Source of the DNA: Mantamonas sphyraenae STR306
Lineage: Eukaryota > Protista > CRuMs
Length of the DNA stretch: 64,000 bases
Assembly: GCA_026936335.1 (NCBI GenBank)
Contig: JAPMXV010000007.1
Span: forward strand, 62,001 to 126,000
Reading direction: 5' to 3'
Positions within the stretch are counted from its first letter, which is position 1. Every line of letters starts with the position of its first letter. This document shows positions 6,974 through 30,972 of this stretch, piece after piece. The notes beneath the pieces were generated by a model. The model ran no database searches. It was not told where the DNA came from and saw only the letters and a list, made by a program, of their open reading frames with translations. The position numbers were made by a program, and so were the translations under genes.

Positions 6974-7649
6974 ATGTCCGAGACAGATAAGAAGTCAGAG
7001 CAGTCGACCAACCAAATCATCATCCAGCTTTCAGAACAGGTGGGTGTGGGGAACGTGGGGGAGCGGGCGTGGACGTAGCGCACAGGAGTGCGCATGAGGG
7101 GGAGTGATCTCACACACGGACACGGACACTGACACACACACACACACGCGCGGGCACACCCACGGATGCATTGCTCACTGGACACACGCTGCACGCAGAA
7201 TGGCGTGTCGACAAACTTCAAGGTGAAGCACACGACGCCGTTCAGCAAAATCATCAAGTCGTGGAAGAAGCAGGCCGGCGCCACTGAGCTCAACTACGAG
7301 TTTCTGTTTGACGGCGAGAAGATCCAGGACCAGGACACGCCGGAATCGGTGAGTGGGGAGACATGGGGTGGGAACGTGAAGGGAGAGCGGACACACAGCT
7401 GCCGTCGGCGGTCGCAGGCGCACTGAAGGCAGGAGACAGAGTTCCCGAGACACGGGCGGTGGCTGGTCGCTGACACCTGCATCTCCGACACACCGTCCCT
7501 GCGCCTGGAATCTCGTACACCCGGGATGTTCACATGGCATTGCACATATGCACACGACACATGCGCCGATTCCGTTTCGATTGCAGCTGGGTATGGAGGA
7601 TCACGACTCGGTGGATGTGATCCTGAAGCAGCGTGGCGGCGCGTTTTGA
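6974..7649 (+). CDS. SUMO-like ubiquitin-fold modifier, 92 aa; exons 6974-7039, 7199-7348, 7587-7649
   Basis: Spliced product contains FKVKHTTPFSKI, FLFDGEKIQDQDTPES-LGMEDHDSVDVILKQRGG-AF. Both introns are phase-0 GT-AG. Confidence 0.9.
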
Positions 7650-7782
7650 GGTTTGAGGTTTGTGAGGACACGAATACACATTGGCAAATTGCACGGTTCC
7701 TTAGGCATGGACACAGCTTCACACACACTGCATGCAACACGCGCGTGGTTGTCGCTTCCAGGTCAGCCAACCGAAACCCCCA

Positions 7783-8532
7783 ATGGCAGACGAGCAGCAG
7801 GCCAAAGTGATGGAACTGGCTCGCCAGTACAAGGATGAAATGGCGCCTGTGCTGCAGCCTGTGATTGTGCCGCGCGGGTGCTTGGTACAGGAGCTGACAG
7901 AGGTGTGCCGGACCGAAGAGCAGCTGGATGCGCTGCAGTACGCTTTGCCCGAGCTGTACGAAGAGTGGATCAAGGATGGGACGCCTTGCTGCACATTGTG
8001 TGGCACAGAAGTGGACTTGGATGCACCCGAGGGTGATTCGGACAGCGAAGAGGACGTGATGGACAAGGAAGAGGCCGAGGAAGATCCAGTGCTGGACGCA
8101 TTCGCCATGACCTGGTGGCCGGACTTTAAAACGCAAAAGTACAGCTTGAGCGGCGCCTACTTTACATGTTCGATGTGCCGCAACCTTTTGGACACGGAGG
8201 GGATGCTGCAGGTGTTTCTGGACACGACGCAGGAGGTTGTGCCGGGCCTGGACTACCTGCTGCTGCACTTTGCCCGCGTCAACTCGCTGCTGCCGGAGGA
8301 CACTTCGTCGATGCAGCTGCAGGACACCATCTACATCGGCAACCAGGCCGAGGTGCTCCAAAGTGTACAGCAGGCCTACAACACGGCCTACACGCTGAAG
8401 ATCTTGGCCAGCAATGCGGGTCCCTGGACTCTCTGTGACCACAAGGGCAAGCCCTTTTCCAAACGCACTGACATGGCGGCTCTTCTCGATGAGACTCTGG
8501 GTGCACGCATCCGGGACGCGGCAGGTGGACAT

Positions 8533-17206: not shown

Positions 17207-20200
17207 TCAAGCGGCGCTTGGCTCTTCCCCGCCTTCCTCTGTCTCTTCCTCCTCGTCACTGCTCTGCAGGATCGTGCTGAGCTCCAGAAAGTTGGCTCGC
17301 AGGTGCATTGCACGACGTGTGAACCCGCCAAAGCACGATTGGTCCTCAATCACAGCCTCCAGTGTGTCGACACCTTTGTGCAGCATGTCCATCAACATCA
17401 ACTGGCTCTTGTTCAAACGCCCCTTTTCTGTGGCACTGCCCTTCAGCACCAGCAATGCAGGAAGCATCCTTTGCTCCAGAGCCGCCATCTCCGACGCAAT
17501 TTCCTGCCGCAGCACCAGAAGCTCACGCGCAAACCTCGACCAATCTCTCTTTGCTTGAAAGACCACCGTGCGTTCCAGCGCAAGCTCAAACTCCTTCACC
17601 AACTGCCCATAGTCTTCAAAAAGTACGCGTGGTAGCTCCGACGCCAAGACTGCGGCGTTGAACCGTGTGCCCCGGCTCACGGTGCGCTCGAGGACACTCG
17701 ACTCCTCCTCGTCCGATGCCCCTTCGTCACCCTCCTCCTTCTGTGCCTCCTTGTCTTTGCCATCCGTGCTTGTGCTCGCCTCCAATTCGCTGTCCCCTTC
17801 TTCCTCCACCTCGGCGACATAGGCGCGATCCCGCGAGGCCAGCGTGTGCTTGATGAACGACCCCTCTCCAAGCACATACCCATGCTTCTGTTGCACTGCG
17901 CGAAACACCTCCTCCTCCAACGCAGGCATGCTCACCTGCAGTTGCATCATCGAGTACCGCGTGTTGTTTCGCAACCTCGATGGAACACGGCTGCGTAGGA
18001 TGTGGACTTCGTCGTCGTCATCGTCATCCCCAGGCCCATCTCCTCCGTTGCCGTCGTCGCTGCTCTCTTGATTGGGTGTGTCGTCCTTGGCCAGCAAACG
18101 CCGGCTCAGGTTTCGGCGTAACGACACCCGCTGCCTGCCTTCCGACTGCAGCAGCTGAAAGCGCTCCACCATGTCCAGTTTGTTCACCAGCGCATGGATG
18201 ACCTGCAGCGACAACGAAACACGTGTTTGCACGCCAGACAGCGTGTCCGAACCCTCGCTGGCTTCCAGTTTTGCAAGCCGCCCCTTGACCAGCCCCAGCA
18301 CCTCTTCAATGCCAGCCAAGGCATCCAGGACGCTGCTTGGGGGCGGCAGCACTGCCAATTGACACATCAAGTCGCTTAGTTGCTTCACCTGCTCGCTTCG
18401 CATGTTTCCGCGCGACGCCTTGGCCACGTAGCAGCTCGCGGCGACAAGATCACGCTGCCATCCGTTGCCCACCAAGCAGCTGCTGCACAGCTCCACAAAC
18501 GCGAAAAACTCCAGCGACTGCGGACGAGGGGGCAATACAAGCATGCTCGTCAGCACCATGGCAATCCCTCCCGTGCCCAGGAAGCTGCTGCATGATACAT
18601 CTCGTTCGTCCACAGGTCGCACCGCAACATGCAGATCCATGCCCTCCTCCTCCTTCTCCTCCTCCTTATCTTCTTTCTTGTCGCCACTCCCATGCTCGTC
18701 CTCTGTCTCAGATGCACTCAGTCGTCGCGCGTGCACATCCGCAAGCCCCATTGCCAGCAGATTGCCGCTCCCACTTCCAAACGAGCTGCCGAAGCTGCTG
18801 CCAAGGCTGCCTACTGACAGCGTGCTGTTCACACTGATGGAACGGCCTCCCTCGCTGCTCTCGGACGACGACGATGCCGTGCTGCGCACAGATGCCCGCC
18901 TGTCCGTCACTTTGACCACGTCGCCGCCGGTGCCGTCCATCATCGACTCCCAGTACGTGGTCAGATCTTCCGCCAGCGTGTCCAGTAGCTTAAGTCGCTG
19001 AGTGCGCAGGTTGCCCACCAGTTCACTGGTCTTGTCGTCGTCCTCCAGGCTTGACTGGTCCACCTCGATTCGCAAAGCATCCGACCTGTTCACCAGCTGC
19101 AGCAGTGCAAACTGCACCTGGATTTCGTACTCCCGCAGCACGTCCAGATCCAATTCTACGTCCATGTCCGAGTACATCGACTTGACATACGCGCCTCCGC
19201 CCTCGATCCATGCCTCAAACTGGTCCTGCCACTTGTTCATCACCTGCGCCATGCTCTGGCTGCACATGCGAAAGTATGGCTCCGAGTATTCTGCAATGAG
19301 CACGTCTATGGCCCCGGCCTCGTCTGAAGTCTCGGTGTCGCCCAGGTCAGCCCCGACGTCCATCTTGCCCATCGATGCGTCCTGAATCGAGCCGCGCTTG
19401 CGCCTGCTGTCCGAGTCGCTGCGGCTGCTTCCACTGCTCTCGCCATTGTGTCCAAGCATCCCCTTGGCCATGGAACTTGGCGACATCGTCATCTTGTCCA
19501 GCAGCCACTTGGTCGTGCTGACCTTGGGCTGTACCGCCTCACGTGGCTCCACCTGCAGGGAGTGCACATAGCAGTCCTCTTCATCCATAAACTCCAATCC
19601 CTCCAGAAGGGCCAGCACGGGTTCGATGCGCTCCACGTCGTACTGCACCGACTGGAATCGCTCCACGTCCGCCAACACGCCAGCCATGATCTCTAGCTTC
19701 TCAAAGTTGATGAGCTCGCCGGCCACACGTGACGAGTTCACCTCGTGGATGATCGTCAGATTCGACAAAATGATACCCAAGTACGGCACACAGGGAAGGG
19801 TGCACTCGCGCAGCCGCGCGTGGTATAACTTGTAGCGACCTGCAGATGAGTACAGCTTGCGCATCGAGTCCAGAATACCTTTGAACCGTGTGCGGTTGAC
19901 CAGTTTCCAGGTGCGGTTCAAACGATGCACAGCCGTGCAGCCCAGGCCGGCCAGAATTTGCATGGCGCTGCTAAAGTTGTTCAGCTGCGTGCAGTGCTCT
20001 GCCACACGAATATACATCTTGAGCAGTTGGGCACGCCTCTTTGTGTCTTGTTCCGTCACGAGCGTCGTGGCCACCCACAATGCAACCTGGTTGAAGCGAT
20101 CCACAACAGCGGGGACGTTGGGACACCGTTCAGGCAGCTTCTTCCAGTTGCAGTTGACCAACTCATGTGGACGGATGCGCCTGAACAATTCCATCTCTAG

Positions 20201-22759
20201 CAGGCACATTTGCTGCGCCACCACCTCTGCGTCCAGATCGAGAAAGTCGAAATCGTCCCCCTGTTCTGCCGACGAGAGGGCGGCATGCGAGGACATCAGC
20301 GGCGTCGGCTGCTGTGTGCCCAGGTGCACGTGCGTCAATGTAAACTGCAGCTGCATGCGCAGGCTCTCCGGCAATCCTGGTTGGAACTCGGCCAAGTCGT
20401 TGTCCACAAATTCGTCCCACTGCTCTGTGAAGGACGAGTGCGTGCTAAACACAGACGGGTCGTGCACCATCCACTGCTTGAGCACCTGCACGACGCGTTG
20501 GCGCACCACCTGCCGAACATCACGCTCGAAATTCGACTGGCTTCCCACACCGCTGTACTCGATGTGGAAGCGCTTGCGCAACAGGGCGAGAAGTTCCTCG
20601 GGTTCCAAGAAAGCGTGGTATGTGCGCAAGAACACCTTGTTGAACTGCGTGTCCGGATACTTGTGGTACGTGAGTCGCTCGACAAGCCTTTTCACGGTTC
20701 CAGCCTTGACACGCGGCACCACGCTGTCGCTCGAGCCCAGACGCGATCCCCCGCTGCCACTGCGTTTGCTCAGCTCCTCGTGGTCGTCATCACTGTCCCT
20801 CGAGCCGCGTGCCTCTGTTGATCCCGGGGATCCCTTTGGCGAGCTGCTGCTACTGCTGCTGCTGCTGCCACTGCTGCTGCTGCTGCTTTCCACGTCCACA
20901 CTCTCCAAGATGAGCGTGGTCATGATCTCCTCCGAGTCGTCGTCACGTTCGTCGTCGCCGTCGGCGCCCTGCGTTGTTTTGTCCTTTTCGTCGTCCCGGT
21001 CGGTACTCTGTGCGTCTGACTGCTTCTGATCCGACTCTTCATCACCATCGGCAGGTTGTGGAGTGCGCCACGGCGTGCGCATGCGATGTAGTCTTAAATA
21101 CGTGCGCAGGGTCTCACGAAACACCTCTGTGACGTGTCGTTGCTGCATGGGACTGCACTCAAAGTAGCCGCAGTTCATCTGCTCCGCTTTGCTCTGGGCA
21201 AGTTGCAAGGACACAGCTCGTTCCATACGCTGTCCTCGCACAGCCAGATCCAACCTGTTGGCCAGCAACACCACAGGCGTTGGTTGTCCGCGACGCACGA
21301 CACGTAGCAGGTCGTGCAGGCGATGGATGCGCTCCAGTGTGTCTGGCTTGAGTGCGTTGAACACAAGCAGGAATGCGTCTGCCCGCTTGCGCACAATCTG
21401 CCCTGCGAGGGACTCGTCGTCGTCGTTGGTGCTGAGATCCTCCCACGCCACTCCCAGTTTCTCTCCGTCGATGATATTGAGTTGGTACTGCTGGCCATCC
21501 ATGGTGGCAAACTTGCGATACATGCCCGACAAGTCCTCTGCGGCCTCCACCTGTTCCTCCTCCTGCTCCACAAACTGGTGGATCAGCGGTTGCAGAGCCG
21601 ACTCGAATCCGAGCACCAGCTGTGGCACATGGCAGCGTGTGTGGGTGTGGTGTGTGGGTGGGTTTGTGTGGGTGTGTGTGTTTGCGTGTGTGTGTTTGCG
21701 TGTGTTGGGATGGTGTCAGCATGTGCGCACGGCGCTTTCGTCGTCTTCCGTGTCGCGAGAGGCCAGAACCTACAATGTTGACCCGCGACGCCTCTTTCGC
21801 CGAGGCCTGCCTGCGTGACAGTGTTTTCAACCGTGTCGTAGACGATGCTGCGCGGCTGCGATAGAAACCGCTGGTTTGGAGGACTGTGTGCGAGCGGGAG
21901 CGGTCCCAGGGAACGTCGGGCGGCCAGGAGGGAAGGAAGTGTCAGGGGATGGCGTGTGCGTTTCCGCAAAAAAACCAACAGGCAAGGTGCACGTCAACGT
22001 ACCGCGCTGCTTCATGTCGTCGTTGGCACGACCCATAAGCACGTTTGAAGCGCTGGAGTTCACGCCCGAGCTTCGTCCGGGACCTTTGGTCTGCTGCTCA
22101 GTCAATCTGCTTGCCAGAAAAGTGGCCACCTCGCTTTGGTCGACAATCACGCCCGAGCGCGGCCTGCGTCCACTGGCCATGCGTCCTACACTCCGTGATG
22201 ACTCTGATTCCTCGTCTGTGTTGCTCACCCGCAGGCTATCACTGTCCTCACTGCTCAAGGACGAGTCAACCAGCTGCTTGCCATTTCCTGCTCGGTTGCT
22301 CCTGCTGCTGCTGCTGCCCTGGGTTCCTTCGTCGTCACTGTGTGCGCAGTCGTCGTCGTCATCGTCACTTGTAATCACCACCTTGCGACTGGCCGCCGAC
22401 GAGCTCGGTGTGCGTCCACTGGCTCCGTGCACGAGCCTGGCAACAAGATCGTCTTCGTCAAAATCGTCGTACGTTTGCAACTGCGCGTCGTGGTCGACCA
22501 ACGAGCGCCAGTCTGGCACTGCCGACTCCAATGTTTCATACAATAGCTCCAGTGCATCCGACTTGGCCATGTCGCCCAACTTTTTCCATTCCTGCCATCG
22601 GTTGCGCGCCGTCTTTTTCAGCAAACTTGGCTGCGGCGTGTTACACGGCCCCAATGTCGCCTGCTGATACAGGCCATGTAACCTATTCCGTGTTTGTTTG
22701 TCGCATTGCGCATTGAGCCCACGCGACGAAATGAGCTCCTCCGCAACACGCACGTCCAT
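17207..22759 (-). CDS. Multidomain RasGEF: acyl-CoA-binding (ACBP) domain, degenerate Ras-like domain, REM, CDC25 GEF domain and helical C-terminus; exons 22759-22003, 21883-21774, 21619-17207
   Basis: ACBP: LHGLYQQATLGPCNTPQPS...WQEWKKLGDM. Ras-like: ADAFLLVF...PVVLLANRLD...YFECS. REM: VKAGTVKRLVERLT...FLRTYHAF. CDC25: LNNFSSAMQILAGL...PCVPYLG...INFEK. Introns are phase-compatible GT-AG. Confidence 0.82.
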
Positions 22760-25012: not shown

Positions 25013-25276
25013 GCTTCCGTTTGTGCAAATGAAAACACACTCCACACTCCACAACAAAGGAATGACCTCATCCGCCGGTCTCATGCATTTTGGAGCTCGT
25101 GCCGGCCTGCCCCTGCGACACTACAGACTGTTCGGTTCAAGTTGACCCTCGCGCCGCAAACCCAGTTGCCAATGCACTTCCCATTCTGAAGTTTGTTCAT
25201 CCACATTTGGCACGGCTTGTGTCCCGAAGCTGTGCTCGTTTGGTACTTGGCCCGTCCCATAGCCTGTAGGTGGAGG

Positions 25277-28200
25277 ATGGCCAAAAGCTGCGCCGCACTG
25301 GGCAAGCAAACGCACAAAATGAGCGAGCATACAAAGCAAACAAAGCAAACAAAGCAAACAAAGCAGAAAGGCCAAAGGAAACGTAGGCACAGCAACATCG
25401 TCGTTGACCAAGACGATGAGGACGGCCGTTCCGGTCACGAGCGGGGAGACCAGAAGCGGTCTCGCCACCACATGTGCGCTTCCCCCCATTGCGACAGTGT
25501 CCTGCAACTTCAAGAGAGATTCTGCAATGAGTGTGTTCTTTGTGGAAGCGGCCAGGGTTCGGGTTCTGTGGTGGACGTGTACACTGTGCAGCGCCGCAGC
25601 GCGCGGAACAGCAACATCGGCAGCTCCGCCATGTTCCAGGGTGCAGCAGCGGCGCTTGCCGCATCTGCTGATACCATGGACACAGAATGGGAGTCTGGTG
25701 GGATTGAGGAGTACAGCGATGACGACTACGACGACGAGTACAGCGACGACGACGAGGACAGCGACTACGATGAGTACCGGCCGGTCGTGACCCGGCCGCG
25801 GAAAATGCGCCAACCAGTTCTGTTGCCTGCAGCCGCCGAGGAGGTGGGTGGTGACTTCCAACTGGCACCTGGACGACGAGGAGGCAGTGGAAAGGCCAAA
25901 CGGCAGAGGCAGATCTTGCAGGGCTTTGGCATCGAGTTCCAGCAGGGCTTGACTCAGCTGGAGGGTGACGTCGTTGTGTTGGTGGACGTCAGTTCAATCG
26001 TACACACGCGATTGGAGGCAGCCGCACGTGTTGCCGACGTACCCGAGGCCAAGGTGCGTGAGCTGGTGACGCAGTGTGTGGAGGCCGAAAAAGCGGCCAC
26101 CGAGTTGAGGGTCGATCTCTCCGGGGCGGACAGCGTCAAGTTCATCCTCATTTGTGATTTGAAACCTGAATTGATCAACGAGCAAGCCCACTCAGTGACC
26201 TTTGGCACGCACGTGAGGCGCATGGAGGGTACTCTGGCGCAGGTGAACACCATGTGCAAAGCGCTCCGCAAGGTACACAAGGACAAGGACGTCAGCCTCG
26301 ACCGCTTGGCGCAGGGGCACCATCTTTGCTTGAGTGGCCAGGCGCAGGCAGCAGTGTATCATGCTGTGCAAGACCTCTGCTCGCGACACCAGATTTACGA
26401 GCTTGGAAATGAGATCGCCGATGAGACGCACCTGTGCTGTGCGGATGACGTGAAGAACAGGGTTGTGCAGTCGTACGACCAGCAGGAGAACGTCAGCTTC
26501 GTGGTGCCACTGTTCGATACCGATTGGGGGTACAACATCACCAGGCACCCAGTGTGCTTGGTGCACCGCAAGCTTGGCTGGGCCACAGTTCTGCCGGAGG
26601 TGGGGAAACTGGTTTGCCTGGTTGCTGCGCTGCAGCTGTCCGGTGATGTCGAGGCAACCGTCAGGGCACCGCGTCGCAGTATGCTCTCCTTGGAAGAAGA
26701 GAGCCTGCGCGAGCTCCTGGAAGGCGGGGAAAGCTTGCTGGGGTACATCTACGCCCCAATCCTGGAAAACGACACATCCATTGCACATCTACTGCAAGGT
26801 ACATGTGGCACACAGCCCGCGTCAAATCACCGTCGCCTGGTGGAGCAACACGCACAAAAGTACCTGGCTGGTGTGAGGCTGTACCTGATTCAGTTTGGGT
26901 TTGACGATGCAACCATCAAGACTCTGATGTGTTTGGATTCATGGCAGGATGTGTTTGGTACAGGTGGAATGTCCGCCCACCTGGACACAGAGGGATTGCC
27001 TGTGGCGCAAGTGCTGGGCGTTGCCGAGCTGGACGGCGGCGGCGGGCAAGTCGATGCCCTGTTTCAGAGATACGTCGCACAGTATGCCGTGGCTGAGCAC
27101 GACACATTGCGTGAGGCACGTGTGTTGCCACCAGGAGACGTGGTTCAGCACGCACAGGCGCTGCGCGGTGCACAGACCCTCTCCACTGTGCTGCCTGACC
27201 TGAAGGCCAGTGTGGTTTCCCGTTGGGAAGCCAGGGAGCCACACAAAGCACTTGCTGTGCCATTGACGGACTTGCAGTCCCGACATGCACACCGTGTGAC
27301 CGTTGACTTCACCGCTGTTGGAATGGAGGGCCTGGCGGCGGCTGCGGTGGGGGACGCAGACACCAGCTACACCAATCCAGCCAGCATGTACAACAACATG
27401 CTGTCAGTCCGGAAGTGGAAGAGCCTGTGCCGCAAACACATTCCAGGCAAGTTCCACCGCCAGCAGCTGAGCAATTTGCACGGCGTGCTGGACACCGATA
27501 CTTGCGAGCAGCTCAAGGACACGGATTTGGGAAACGCCATGATGAAGGAGGAGGTGGGTATCGATTTGTCCATGAGCGTGTTCATCGGCAGTACGCAGCA
27601 ACTGGCCAGCTTGCTGGGAGGTGTGGCACCGAGCAACGAGGAGGCGGCGTTGTGGAACACAAGGGTCAGCGACGCCATCGACCACGTCTACGGATCGCCA
27701 CAAGTCGATGGTGGTGCCCACGAGGGCTCACGGTTGGACTGTGTCATTGACACCATCTTGCCAGCGCCAGAAGACGACGACTGGGGGGTGTTCTTGGGGC
27801 TCACCACACCCAAGCTCGACTCAGACCAAACAGAGCGACTGGCATCGGGCTCATGTGTGGTGGAGCTTGGTACGCTTGCGGAGCTGCGCAACTCTGCATT
27901 GATCGCTGAAGATGCGGTGGACCAGCTGACGCTAATGGGGCAGGCCTTTGGCGTGATCGCTGCGGTGCAGAGTGATCTCCTCGAATGCTGTCGGCTCGAA
28001 CCACACAAGGAGCTCGCGAATGTCCTGTCGGCCACGTGCCAGCTGAAGAAGGGTCATTTCTACTTGAAGGCACCCCCGGATGTGAACATCACAAGCGAGG
28101 CAGATTCCATGTTCCCCGGCTTCATTCCTGTGACGACAGACCTCGTGCTGAGCAGGACACACAACGGTGACATCGTGGCCGAGTACTTGGACGAGATGGG

Positions 28201-30808
28201 TAACGAGGCCGCGCGCGAAGGGATGGATGTCAGTGGACTGCCTTCCGGTACGTTTCAAACCCTGTGCGAGCGAGGTGCTGCACACGTGGTCGCCGGATGG
28301 AGGGTCATGCTGATGGGCCAGGCCAGCGACAACATTGTGGACCTGGCAGTGGCATCTCACGACCTCGAGCGCCGCGATGTCCTGGATTTCGTCAAACGCA
28401 TGCACAAGGACGACGATGACGATGGGGACTCGTACATTCCAGACACAACCACAAGCACAGCATGCGAGCGTGCTGTCGTGGCCGTGCTGCGCTCAGTGGC
28501 GGGTGTTTCCTTGCAGAGGTACAAGACACTCATGGGCAAGAAAGACTCCAGCACAGCCTCCCATGCCTGCGCGTTTAAGCTGGCCAGTGCATGCAACTCC
28601 ACACGGAAGCTGTATGGGGACAAGCACTCCTTCAACCTGCAGCTTGCCGCTGAGCGAGAGAAGCTCTTTGGGCGATGGGCGTTGGGCGCGCTGGTGGACG
28701 GGTTGCTGGCGGCATGCAGGGAGGAGGGGGTGGACAGTATGATGGCCTGGTCTGTTCTGTGTGGAGCCGTATCCTCGACCCCGATTGCGTGCCCAGAAGG
28801 CGAGTACTTGCCGCCGCCGTGCGAGCAGTGCATTTCAGGCCGCACGGACTGTGAATGCGATGTCGGCAATTGGTTACACAACGCAAAGCTGAGTGACAAT
28901 TCCCCGCAGGTTCACGGCCTGCGATCGTCACTTGCCTGGCATATGATGATGGTCGAGGACGACGGCGAGAGCGGCTGCGGCAGCAGCCGCCTGTTCCCGC
29001 CAAACGCCATCGAGGCGATGCACGTGTGTGCCTCAAGGTGCGCAACCGGCACTGCTCGCATTGTCACCTACAACGACGACATCATTCCCGCGGGAGAGAT
29101 GGGATCGTACACCGACGCCTTGTTTCTCGCGGCCTTCGACATCTTTCGCGTGGTTGACCCATCGCACGCCCCCCGGATTGCGAAAACACCCTTCATCAAC
29201 GGGGAGCACATCTCGGTCCGGATGTTCTCCGCCGTCCATATGCTTCACGTGCGGCACTGGCAGGTGCCTGCCGGGACAGGGCAGCGCCGGCTGTACCATC
29301 TGGAGAATCTCATCCTCCCTCACGAACGCCTCTCCCTGTTCCCCACCCTACGCTCGAGCCTCCACCTTCTCCGGAACCCTGTTGCAACGGCGACACCACG
29401 TCCCACCGACGATGCAGAACTGCTCCGGTTCTTGCAGGGAGACAAGCGGATCCTCGACGATACACCAGATGCTGTTCCTGCACAATCGTCACCGTTTGTG
29501 TCTCACAGCAACCAGCGGTACAGCTTTTCGAGAAACGGCAAGGGCGCCCTGGAAGGCACATCGAAACGGGGCCGCGACGGAGACGCACACACGGAGCAAC
29601 AGCGCAGCCAACGACGCCTCATTGACCGTGTTGCGGGTGTGGTTGTCAGGCTGTGCCAGATTGGCATGTATGTCGCCTCCTACCAACACCAGGAGGGCCG
29701 GTTGGAGAACGATCCCCAACACACGGCCCATGGTCACGGAGTGGCACGAACTCAGACTGCTGCAGTACACAACCTGCTCCGCAAGTGGCTCCCGCGTTCG
29801 GCCGAGAAGATAATCCGTCTGGGGTTGTGCCCACAGTCACTGGAACACACGCGGCGTCCGCACGGCGTTGTCAGCTCGTTCACACGGCTCATTCCGCTGA
29901 GCACCGAGGCGAACAATCGATTGCAGCTTGTGGGCATGGACCCGGGGATCTCGAACGCGCCATCTGCTTTGTGCATCCCGAGGAAGAAGCCCGCCAAGGA
30001 CGCCGACAACCCGGTCCACTTCGCAGATGCCTGGCGCTTCTCGCCACCCTCGCTAGGGGCCTTGGAACGAAAGACAGGACTCAAGCGCGACAATGCACAG
30101 CTCTCTGTGACGGTGCGTGAGAAGATGCAGGTCCTGCGCAGCAAACGTGCCGGGTTGTTTGCGGACGTGCACATTGCGGCAAGGACTGGACGGGTGCTGA
30201 GGAGCCAGTGCAGCGGCAAGAACCTGGCGTCGTCTGAACAATGTTCATCCGCTCATGTGCATGACGGATGCAACCAGAGTGGCCACAGTGAGACGCTTCA
30301 TCGACGCGACAAGAACGGCAAGGTGCGCAAACTCCGGGAACGCTGGCTGGCGCAGGTACGGGCGACCGAGAAGATGCAGTTGAAGAAGGGGCAACTGCGA
30401 CGCATCACACTGCTGTGCATTGGTGACGGATACAAGGGGGGCCGTGGCGGTGTGAAGAAGCTCGAAGCTCTGGCCGCGCACAACATGCTCGTTGTGCGTG
30501 TAAATGAGTGTAACACAACGCTGCGATGCCCCACATGTGGCAGTGTGCACGAGAGCAAGCACGGGAGTGCACGCACTGCGCGTGTCAAGTACTGTACGCG
30601 ATGCAACATGCACCGGAACCGGGACTTTGCCAGCGCACAAGCAATCGCGAACAAGGTGTACGCTGCGCTTCGCGGACACACCATATGGTGCATGACCAAG
30701 GTTTGGCAACGGAGTCAGATCGGAAGGACGTTCCGAAGCAAGATTGGTCTGCCAGAGGACGTGGACGGCAAGGCAGAGACCCTGGAGGCGAATTCGAGTG
30801 CAGGCTGA
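25277..30808 (+). CDS. Giant Fanzor/TnpB-like RNA-guided nuclease (about 1,843 aa from the first ATG) with a putative N-terminal PIN/FEN-like domain
   Basis: RuvC-I LVGMDPG, CIGDG at the canonical RuvC-II position, shifted glutamate VNECNTT, zinc ribbon CPTC...CTRC, and RuvC-III NRDFASAQAI. N-terminal VLVD / LICD / ADD / DTD / LSGD acidic motifs. Intronless. Confidence 0.85.
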   Translation: MAKSCAALGKQTHKMSEHTKQTKQTKQTKQKGQRKRRHSNIVVDQDDEDGRSGHERGDQKRSRHHMCASPHCDSVLQLQERFCNECVLCGSGQGSGSVVDVYTVQRRSARNSNIGSSAMFQGAAAALAASADTMDTEWESGGIEEYSDDDYDDEYSDDDEDSDYDEYRPVVTRPRKMRQPVLLPAAAEEVGGDFQLAPGRRGGSGKAKRQRQILQGFGIEFQQGLTQLEGDVVVLVDVSSIVHTRLEAAARVADVPEAKVRELVTQCVEAEKAATELRVDLSGADSVKFILICDLKPELINEQAHSVTFGTHVRRMEGTLAQVNTMCKALRKVHKDKDVSLDRLAQGHHLCLSGQAQAAVYHAVQDLCSRHQIYELGNEIADETHLCCADDVKNRVVQSYDQQENVSFVVPLFDTDWGYNITRHPVCLVHRKLGWATVLPEVGKLVCLVAALQLSGDVEATVRAPRRSMLSLEEESLRELLEGGESLLGYIYAPILENDTSIAHLLQGTCGTQPASNHRRLVEQHAQKYLAGVRLYLIQFGFDDATIKTLMCLDSWQDVFGTGGMSAHLDTEGLPVAQVLGVAELDGGGGQVDALFQRYVAQYAVAEHDTLREARVLPPGDVVQHAQALRGAQTLSTVLPDLKASVVSRWEAREPHKALAVPLTDLQSRHAHRVTVDFTAVGMEGLAAAAVGDADTSYTNPASMYNNMLSVRKWKSLCRKHIPGKFHRQQLSNLHGVLDTDTCEQLKDTDLGNAMMKEEVGIDLSMSVFIGSTQQLASLLGGVAPSNEEAALWNTRVSDAIDHVYGSPQVDGGAHEGSRLDCVIDTILPAPEDDDWGVFLGLTTPKLDSDQTERLASGSCVVELGTLAELRNSALIAEDAVDQLTLMGQAFGVIAAVQSDLLECCRLEPHKELANVLSATCQLKKGHFYLKAPPDVNITSEADSMFPGFIPVTTDLVLSRTHNGDIVAEYLDEMGNEAAREGMDVSGLPSGTFQTLCERGAAHVVAGWRVMLMGQASDNIVDLAVASHDLERRDVLDFVKRMHKDDDDDGDSYIPDTTTSTACERAVVAVLRSVAGVSLQRYKTLMGKKDSSTASHACAFKLASACNSTRKLYGDKHSFNLQLAAEREKLFGRWALGALVDGLLAACREEGVDSMMAWSVLCGAVSSTPIACPEGEYLPPPCEQCISGRTDCECDVGNWLHNAKLSDNSPQVHGLRSSLAWHMMMVEDDGESGCGSSRLFPPNAIEAMHVCASRCATGTARIVTYNDDIIPAGEMGSYTDALFLAAFDIFRVVDPSHAPRIAKTPFINGEHISVRMFSAVHMLHVRHWQVPAGTGQRRLYHLENLILPHERLSLFPTLRSSLHLLRNPVATATPRPTDDAELLRFLQGDKRILDDTPDAVPAQSSPFVSHSNQRYSFSRNGKGALEGTSKRGRDGDAHTEQQRSQRRLIDRVAGVVVRLCQIGMYVASYQHQEGRLENDPQHTAHGHGVARTQTAAVHNLLRKWLPRSAEKIIRLGLCPQSLEHTRRPHGVVSSFTRLIPLSTEANNRLQLVGMDPGISNAPSALCIPRKKPAKDADNPVHFADAWRFSPPSLGALERKTGLKRDNAQLSVTVREKMQVLRSKRAGLFADVHIAARTGRVLRSQCSGKNLASSEQCSSAHVHDGCNQSGHSETLHRRDKNGKVRKLRERWLAQVRATEKMQLKKGQLRRITLLCIGDGYKGGRGGVKKLEALAAHNMLVVRVNECNTTLRCPTCGSVHESKHGSARTARVKYCTRCNMHRNRDFASAQAIANKVYAALRGHTIWCMTKVWQRSQIGRTFRSKIGLPEDVDGKAETLEANSSAG
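25331..25366. repeat. 9-bp tandem repeat encoding (TKQ)4
   Basis: acaaagcaa repeated about four times. Confidence 0.85.
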
Positions 30809-30972
30809 GGACGGGGCACCAGGACCGTCAACCAACCAACCAACCAACCAACCAACACTGGGTGTATTATGCCACCTGACACAGGACGTTCGGTTCAAAT
30901 TGAGCCCACTCGCGTTTGCGCGAGCTGACTCAATTGAACCGAACAGCCTGTAGACGAAAACACAGAAATGGG
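30809..30972 (+). ncRNA. Candidate Fanzor omega-RNA: scaffold in the element's right end plus flank-derived guide; boundaries uncertain
   Basis: A 71-nt hairpin at 30881-30951 ends at the right TIR, downstream of the Fanzor ORF, which is the established position of TnpB/Fanzor guide RNAs. Confidence 0.6.
30829..30856. repeat. (CAAC)7 microsatellite inside the element's 3' end
   Basis: Direct reading of the sequence. Confidence 0.95.

Follow-up and report, generated by a model that had tools for sequence, protein, structure and literature searches.

A giant Fanzor-type protein with a fused 5′-nuclease fold as the sole cargo of a TA-flanked transposon in Mantamonas sphyraenae

What does a DNA transposon gain from a cargo that consists of a single giant nuclease-like protein? 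This question is raised by a 64,000-nucleotide stretch of the protist Mantamonas sphyraenae STR306 (contig JAPMXV010000007.1, positions 62,001 to 126,000 of the forward strand; hereafter the window), in which a 5.5-kb intronless open reading frame (ORF) lies between genes for a proteasome subunit and RPL35A. A sequence-only reading of the window had described the ORF as a Fanzor, i.e. a eukaryotic RNA-guided nuclease, within a complete, probably young and non-autonomous element bounded by terminal inverted repeats (TIRs) and TA dinucleotides. The layout was recovered in full, with a stop-free single frame spanning 25190-30808, PF00227 (proteasome subunit) upstream, PF01247 (L35Ae) downstream, and TA-flanked 17-bp TIRs that differ at one position (Table 1). 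Yet, the protein is not an ordinary Fanzor: as modelled, it is a ~1,830-amino acid (aa) two-nuclease fusion with a FEN1-like 5′ nuclease, recognized at the fold level, at its N-terminus. Anatomy, family, descent, selection, fold and motifs together point to a giant, predicted two-nuclease Fanzor as the sole cargo of a non-autonomous IS630/Tc1-mariner-type DNA transposon. The best explanation, which we place just on the probable side, is that the RuvC lobe uses a guide from the host flank to cut element-free alleles and that the fused 5′ nuclease resects the break, whereupon the element is copied in. We infer every biochemical step of this scheme, RNA-guided activity included.

The residues cited in the earlier reading of the C-terminus lie where it had placed them, i.e. 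the Asp of DPG at 29939, CIGDG at 30416, Glu at 30506, CPTC at 30527, CTRC at 30593 and the final Asp at 30623. With residues counted from the ATG at 25277, D1555, E1744, the four cysteines and D1783 are invariant across the copies of the family, and aa 1555-1783 match the published Fanzor pattern D-X(125,275)-[TS][TS]-XX-C4 zinc finger-X(5,50)-RD (PMC3627910). A further Fanzor signature, given in PMC10711439, combines DPG at RuvC-I with a catalytic Glu six residues ahead of the zinc finger. Here, DPG occupies 1555-1557, E1744 stands six residues ahead of C1751, the gap between the CxxC pairs is 18, and the Asp follows six residues after; the DPG-to-Glu gap is 186, as opposed to the 120-160 used for TnpBs in the same text. 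In Fanzors, Gly or Pro replaces the canonical RuvC-II Glu (PMC10530073), and in the window protein CIGDG closes a predicted strand 28 residues before E1744. The C-terminus reaches 26.8 bits against PF07282 (TNB; cut-off 26.3), and its Glu-zinc finger-Asp stretch aligns with Cas12f (9nzq) and the mimivirus Fanzor2 (9b0l). The nearest look-alikes of aa 1280-1843 by features of the ESM language model are giant-virus TNB/DUF8286 proteins (0.96-0.97; clusters at 0.97), which form clusters of 330-630 aa; no alignment-level relative was found. Fanzor1s are marked by a TDG motif in WED, kinked REC2 helices and an omega-RNA with a stem instead of a pseudoknot at its end. A WED-like hairpin at aa ~1306 reads NDG in 10 of 14 copies and NGE in the window copy and L002; together with the RuvC-II Gly, it leans towards Fanzor1. 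The motifs support a Fanzor-type RuvC lobe with an intact triad of Asp, alternative Glu and Asp, as had been claimed, and in sequence terms the protein bears every mark of a Fanzor, like the Fanzor1s of Tc1/mariner-type elements. The additional claim that the shifted Glu is shared by IS630-linked TnpBs fared less well: while the Fanzor half stands, the accessible texts of PMC10711439 and PMC10691335 yielded no such assignment, the former placing DPG and the alternative Glu in cyanobacterial IS607 TnpBs and the latter proposing IS630 TnpBs only as a possible link.

The N-terminal domain was detected by structure only, being invisible to sequence searches against Pfam, NCBIfam and the PDB. The AlphaFold2 model of aa ~205-560, with predicted local distance difference test (pLDDT) values mostly of 80-90, matches in fold searches the FEN1-like superfamily, whose mark is a PIN-type α/β core with a helical arch and an H2TH-like part. 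Foldseek returned T4 RNase H (E 8e-4) as well as T5 D15, XRN1, Exo1 and FEN, and the exhaustive aligner VIA gave human Exo1 a Z of 11.8 (root-mean-square deviation 4.3 over 275 residues), with XRN1 and T4 RNase H at 11.0 each. The FEN1-like superfamily accounts for the top 13 VIA rows and for 29 of the 30 best named-or-matching Foldseek rows. Viral fold matches comprise poxvirus G5 and giant-virus XRN and FEN, and ESM features also point to 5′ nucleases, near noise level. Six aspartates (D237, D294, D390, D414, D416, D457) are invariant in 14 copies, down to 24% identity, and in the model they fall where expected, at the ends of strands and the beginnings of helices. Their spacing of 57/96/24/2/41 resembles that of T4 RNase H (52/61/23/2/43), of which D19 and D132 appear in the Foldseek output. 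FEN1, Exo1, T4 RNase H, T5 D15, XRN1 and poxvirus G5 share the fold and the six-aspartate layout of aa 205-560 at 8-14% identity and without a Pfam match, but differ from the window domain, which is fused to an RNA-guided-type nuclease. Taken together, the model shows a 5′-nuclease fold with a full acidic site.

The same comparisons bear on the substrate of this domain. Conceivably, the Fanzor lobe serves homing by RNA-guided cutting while the 5′ nuclease acts on RNA, either trimming the transcript of the element to a mature omega-RNA or degrading host or competitor RNA in the manner of XRN1 or the herpes protein VHS. XRN1 is level with Exo1 and T4 RNase H in the VIA scores, giant-virus XRN proteins are among the best viral matches, VHS occurs in the ESM list, and the candidate RNA scaffold described below would form the 3′ end of a transcript of 5.8 kb and thus need 5′ processing. 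However, the Foldseek lists are led by DNA 5′ nucleases (T4 RNase H, T5 D15, poxvirus G5), and compact Fanzors and TnpBs are not known to need a domain of this kind for the maturation of their RNA. We regard an RNA substrate as unlikely, if deserving of attention, and prefer resection of DNA ends as the role of the domain.

The Fanzors known so far are compact proteins of 500-800 aa with a single nuclease. The window protein is more than twice the size of the largest described Fanzor1s, which reach about 800 aa (PMC10711439). A natural fusion of a Fanzor with a FEN1, PIN or exonuclease domain was not found by title or abstract among the papers searched, where only engineered fusions or unrelated work appeared. 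The 1,830-aa two-nuclease architecture is hence new to the literature searched, whereas a Fanzor in a TIR/TA element is already known: the Tc1/mariner elements PGv-1, PUl-1 and PUl-4 likewise have TIRs and a TA duplication, encode a Fanzor1 alone or with a mariner-like transposase, and share the C-terminal D...TTxx-C4-RD motif (PMC3627910). In PGv-1, the second nuclease, a GIY-YIG endonuclease, is a separate ORF, whereas the 5′ nuclease of the window element is fused in one chain. TnpBs of the IS630-linked DDE-6 branch are described in PMC10691335 with an IS630-family DDE transposase and symmetric ends, as in the window family. SpuFz1 has the same triad of Asp, shifted Glu and Asp, but lacks an N-terminal nuclease, has a shorter DPG-to-Glu stretch and shows no detectable sequence match to the window protein (PMC10432273). 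The same two enzyme classes have been joined artificially in exoCasMINI, a T5 exonuclease-Cas12f fusion for which the abstract of PMC12337685 gives 1.1-21-fold higher editing; the window protein is a natural counterpart with ~740 aa extra between the modules and, if the favoured explanation is true, represents nature's version of the fusions that engineers built to raise editing. Outside the genome, no relatives were found in word-based protein searches, in scans of viral, metagenome and prokaryote contigs or by exact look-up, with eukaryotic assemblies poorly covered, and an HMMER search of 1.84 billion entries returned a single 73-aa zinc-finger match and no other relative.

Within the genome, a search for further copies with the same ends had been named beforehand as a check, and it was answered clearly. 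DNA and protein searches of the 25-Mb assembly recovered 13 full-length copies of 5.8-7.1 kb with both ends mapped, plus a 14th, distant ORF with a frameshift in RuvC-II. Protein identity to the window copy ranges from 96% down to 36% among the full-length copies and is 24% for the 14th ORF; for the 13 full-length copies as a family, the range is 36-98%. The exact degenerate TIR pattern has 24 matches in the genome, 23 of which are ends of these elements; with one mismatch allowed, there are 36 matches as compared to 2 for a reversed control. TA stands on both sides of 12 of the 13 copies. Copy L007 (G000 C63) interrupts a host gene with ankyrin repeats, parts of which lie at L007:1325-1502 and 7322-7817, and joining the flanks with a single TA restores the ankyrin frame, which establishes a true TA duplication and fixes the element ends. 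The proposed IS630/Tc1-mariner-type ends are thereby borne out. In contrast, the CTAG target suggested for the window site occurs there only (1 of 13 insertion sites) and is rejected for the family, TA alone being conserved. The closest copy to the window element is 97.6% identical, with a synonymous divergence (dS) of about 0.055. Judged by such divergence the family appears relatively recent, though current mobility is not implied; the label 'probably young' holds as regards this nearest copy and is weakened by the lack of an identical copy and of an intact cognate transposase in the assembly. Derivatives of the size of miniature inverted-repeat transposable elements did not turn up in the genome search. 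One right end stands alone at L057:7655 (G000 C69:55138); it has the TA and a portion of the candidate scaffold but no ORF upstream, and is possibly a stand-alone ('ghost') guide locus or a deletion remnant. Related inverted repeats with flanking TA also bound two elements of 6.75 kb (G000 C4:296220-302971 and C43:588270-595020), with which G000 C1:114928 was grouped and which gave no match in the TNB and transposase searches.

The whole ORF is under purifying selection. Between subfamilies, the ratio of nonsynonymous to synonymous divergence (dN/dS) is 0.17-0.29 for the N-terminal domain, 0.18-0.23 for the C-terminal module and 0.27-0.38 for the middle, and it is 0.32-0.49 among copies that are 96-98% identical. 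Beyond residue ~130, all 13 copies are unbroken, as compared to a neutral expectation of 2.5-4.5 stops per copy at 1.5-2.75% divergence; these copies share history, so their intact ORFs are not 13 independent tests of selection. The last ~450 nt of the ORF (window 30400-30830), which encode RuvC-II, zinc finger and RuvC-III, form a patchwork between subfamilies. Here, the identity of the window copy to L052 rises from 62-65% upstream to 95-97%, and that of L005 to L051 from 63% to 100%. Identity at four-fold sites also climbs, from ~0.43 to 0.73-0.91, which reflects exchange between copies and not constraint alone.

The origin of the element is recorded in two sister copies. In L052 and L053, the giant ORF is separated from the left TIR by a broken transposase of the HTH_32 plus DDE_3 type, frameshifted and with an abnormal end in L052 and without its catalytic half in L053. 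Since these remnants lie inside related TIRs, the ancestor of the family was an autonomous element of the IS630/Tc1 type, and the earlier description of a complete but non-autonomous TIR/TA element is upheld. The window copy itself encodes no transposase, and genome searches found no intact copy of the cognate enzyme. About 17 other near-complete IS630-type transposases form three families, A, B and C, which were rejected as cognate partners, given their 30-37% identity to the remnant and the absence of CAG at their left boundaries. A transposase hidden within the giant ORF was likewise dismissed, as there is no DDE match and the N-terminus has the 5′-nuclease fold. As a separate observation, a family-A transposase element at L039:960 (G000 C44:17466) starts exactly at the left end of the Fanzor copy L004, in opposite orientation.

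Of the ~17 other IS630-type transposases, five, apparently intact, are found about 6-7 kb upstream of other giant TNB ORFs on the same strand (Table 1), and these loci are candidate autonomous giant-Fanzor elements. On C2, C11 and C57, the first ~200 codons of the giant ORF form a separate frame that is probably an exon; the N-terminal exon of a B-family giant ORF gave no alignment to the PIN profile of the window element's family. This arrangement would suit a direct part in transposition, in which RNA-guided binding and the 5′ nuclease tidy the ends of the donor site or of the transposon, or direct where a partner transposase integrates, with cutting of empty alleles being secondary. The selection on every full-length ORF, even at 96-98% identity, would also fit, as if every copying event required the protein in cis. 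On the other hand, the insertion sites have only TA in common and, in the genomic stretches compared, show no match to the guides of other copies. The intact RuvC triad moreover speaks for cutting, and RNA-guided transposases such as Cas12k are RuvC-dead. A role of this kind seems to us decidedly improbable next to homing by cutting of element-free alleles.

The TNB domain is matched by 39 frames in the genome, of which about 30 are giant (1,480-2,090 aa), and both modules of the window protein have giant-virus look-alikes. Such abundance might indicate that the system is kept to cut viruses or rival elements, or as an addiction module, rather than for homing at its own empty site. We give this idea little credence, as the predicted guides are ordinary host flanks that differ for each copy, and neither an array nor any trace of foreign spacers is present. 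Alongside the giant ones, four TNB ORFs are of normal size (frames of 630-850 aa) and have stronger Pfam scores (G000 C44:209417, C52:436203, C58:24124, C6:54752).

To return to the homing scheme, the 13 copies with defined ends yield a predicted target-adjacent motif (TAM), scaffold and guides. The base before the left TA is C, A or T, and G occurs in 0 of 12 independent left flanks as compared to 52% of host TA sites (P 1.6e-4). At the right end, the last TIR base before TA is G; with this G-T-A, an H-T-A TAM would distinguish the empty site from the filled one. Excision of the mariner type would leave a footprint that likewise has G before TA, which would make naive alleles the likelier targets. 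In 9 of 13 copies, TA is followed by A, so that part of the bias may be a preference of the transposase. As for the RNA, stem-loop 1 of the candidate scaffold comprises 30859-30878, while stem 2 is closed by ACAG (30881-30884) pairing with CTGT (30948-30951) and thereby takes in the T of the 3′ TA. All 13 copies have a small stem-loop plus an invariant CACAG at 92-115 nt from the end. In the scaffold alignment, 97.5% of cells are paired and one pair is compensatory; the terminal stem is invariant including the target-site duplication (TSD), hence it shows no covariation. In the window copy, a private third TIR-like copy turns stem 2 into a long near-perfect hairpin (z -7.2 as compared to about 0 in five sisters), which was rejected as the family fold. 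An Rfam search gave no match. The TAM of SpuFz1 (CATA) ends in TA, as predicted here, and its two-stem omega-RNA, with a dispensable middle of the second stem, is similar to the candidate scaffold; SpuFz1 makes 5′ overhangs (PMC10432273). Inclusion of the TSD in the RNA, as in the candidate scaffold, has also been reported.

Combined, these features suggest the following course. An RNA from the right end would consist of the two-stem scaffold and TA, with ~15 nt of host flank as guide. The RuvC lobe would cut the element-free allele where an H-T-A TAM (H = not G) directly precedes the guide match, while the filled allele would be spared because its right end presents G-T-A. The fused FEN1/Exo1-like domain would then trim the 5′ ends at the break, and the resulting 3′ tails would favour homing, in which homology-directed repair copies the element over from the filled allele. 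The 3′ patchwork of the ORF is compatible with repair synthesis entering from the right end of the element. Insertion at new sites would need a transposase in trans, which survives only broken in the assembly. If this is true, eukaryotic OMEGA systems reached the size of Cas12a and beyond by taking on break-processing enzymes, and a question raised in PMC13565253, what a cut-and-paste DDE transposon gains from a Fanzor, becomes testable. More tentatively, and short of calling it probable, we propose a distinct class of eukaryotic RNA-guided effectors, in which one ~1,800-aa protein cuts a guide-specified site and resects it, i.e. a self-contained, gene-drive-like homing machine that spreads transposase-less elements and whose radiation has produced dozens of copies within a single protist genome.

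Several observations count against this explanation. The reconstructed empty site of the window element has no match in the assembly. The avoidance of G is partly symmetric (C after TA in only 3 of 13 copies) and could reflect transposase preference, the scaffold covariation amounts to one pair in two related copies, and the 3′ patchwork could be ordinary conversion between already similar sequences. In the N-terminal domain, the 'EA' glutamate of FEN1 is not conserved, with GNE/GND varying among copies, and enzymes acting on DNA (Exo1, T4 RNase H) and on RNA (XRN1) tie at Z 11-12. Finally, AlphaFold modelled aa 900-1843 poorly (mean pLDDT 46), and fold searches with this model gave no TnpB or Fanzor match. 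Modelling of the C-terminus, which had been suggested as a check, was therefore uninformative, and RuvC is assigned by motif instead of structure. One might go further and consider one or both nucleases dead and the ORF a DNA/RNA-binding passenger or a decaying relic, given a RuvC-lobe fold without structural confirmation and, in the window copy, NGE for NDG at the WED-like motif as well as the private change at the right end. Such inactivity is scarcely to be expected with nine catalytic acids of both nucleases kept down to 36% identity, the six PIN aspartates down to 24%, and a dN/dS of about 0.2.

Table 1. Features of the element (window positions) and transposase-associated TNB loci elsewhere in the genome.
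Feature	Position	Strand	Remark
5′ target-site TA	25122..25123	.	predicted 3′ end of TAM; left-end TA in 13/13 copies
Left TIR, 17 bp, first bases CAG	25124..25140	+	
Giant ORF	25319..30808	+	1829 aa from conserved ATG; no intron needed
Low-complexity N-terminal arm, basic then acidic	25319..25880	+	least conserved part of ORF
FEN1/Exo1/T4 RNase H/XRN1-type 5′ nuclease (PIN) domain, aa ~205-560, by model	25889..26956	+	
Mostly helical region, ~740 aa, between the two nuclease modules	26957..29180	+	conserved, dN/dS ~0.3
β-hairpin like Fanzor1 WED 'TDG' motif	29183..29224	+	tentative; motif from PMC10711439
RuvC-I, D1555 in DPG	29933..29947	+	invariant in 14 copies
RuvC-II strand end CIGDG, Gly where canonical TnpB has Glu	30416..30430	+	assigned by motif, not superposition
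Alternative Glu E1744, CxxC 1751-1754, CxxC 1773-1776, RuvC-III D1783	30500..30625	+	
Candidate omega-RNA scaffold	30859..30952	+	two stems, short linker
Third TIR-like copy	30882..30898	+	private to window element, no sister has one
Right TIR	30934..30950	-	
3′ target-site TA	30951..30952	.	TA in 12/13 copies, AA in one
Predicted native guide (host flank)	30953..30967	+	predicted from Fanzor1 rules; ends just before likely RPL35A start
Transposase + 1,540-1,640-aa TNB frame	G000 C2:227110-233665, C11:271572-278184, C57:104825-111403		same strand
Transposase + 1,540-1,640-aa TNB frame	G000 C44:200440-207743, C44:318368-325670		same strand

The first ATG of the giant ORF, at 25277, would give 1843 aa, while the ATG common to the sister copies at 25319 gives 1829 aa. 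The N-terminal arm contains an RKRRH at aa 34-38, which by its sequence may act as a nuclear localization signal, and a small Cys cluster; it is frameshifted in copies L002 and L007, be it real or an assembly error. For the ~740-aa middle region, no family or fold match was obtained in the searches run, and REC-like parts are expected within it. In all copies, the stop codon and the candidate scaffold are separated by a (CAAC)n microsatellite of variable length (window 30830-30856).

As to the genomic setting, the element starts 109 nt past the stop of the proteasome-subunit gene and ends 17 nt ahead of the likely RPL35A start codon at 30968. The insertion probably separates this essential ribosomal-protein gene from its promoter, and the right end of the element may supply a replacement. 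Elsewhere in the window, a long ORF on the reverse strand (17207-21628) appears by eye to encode a Ras-like domain followed by a RasGEF domain.

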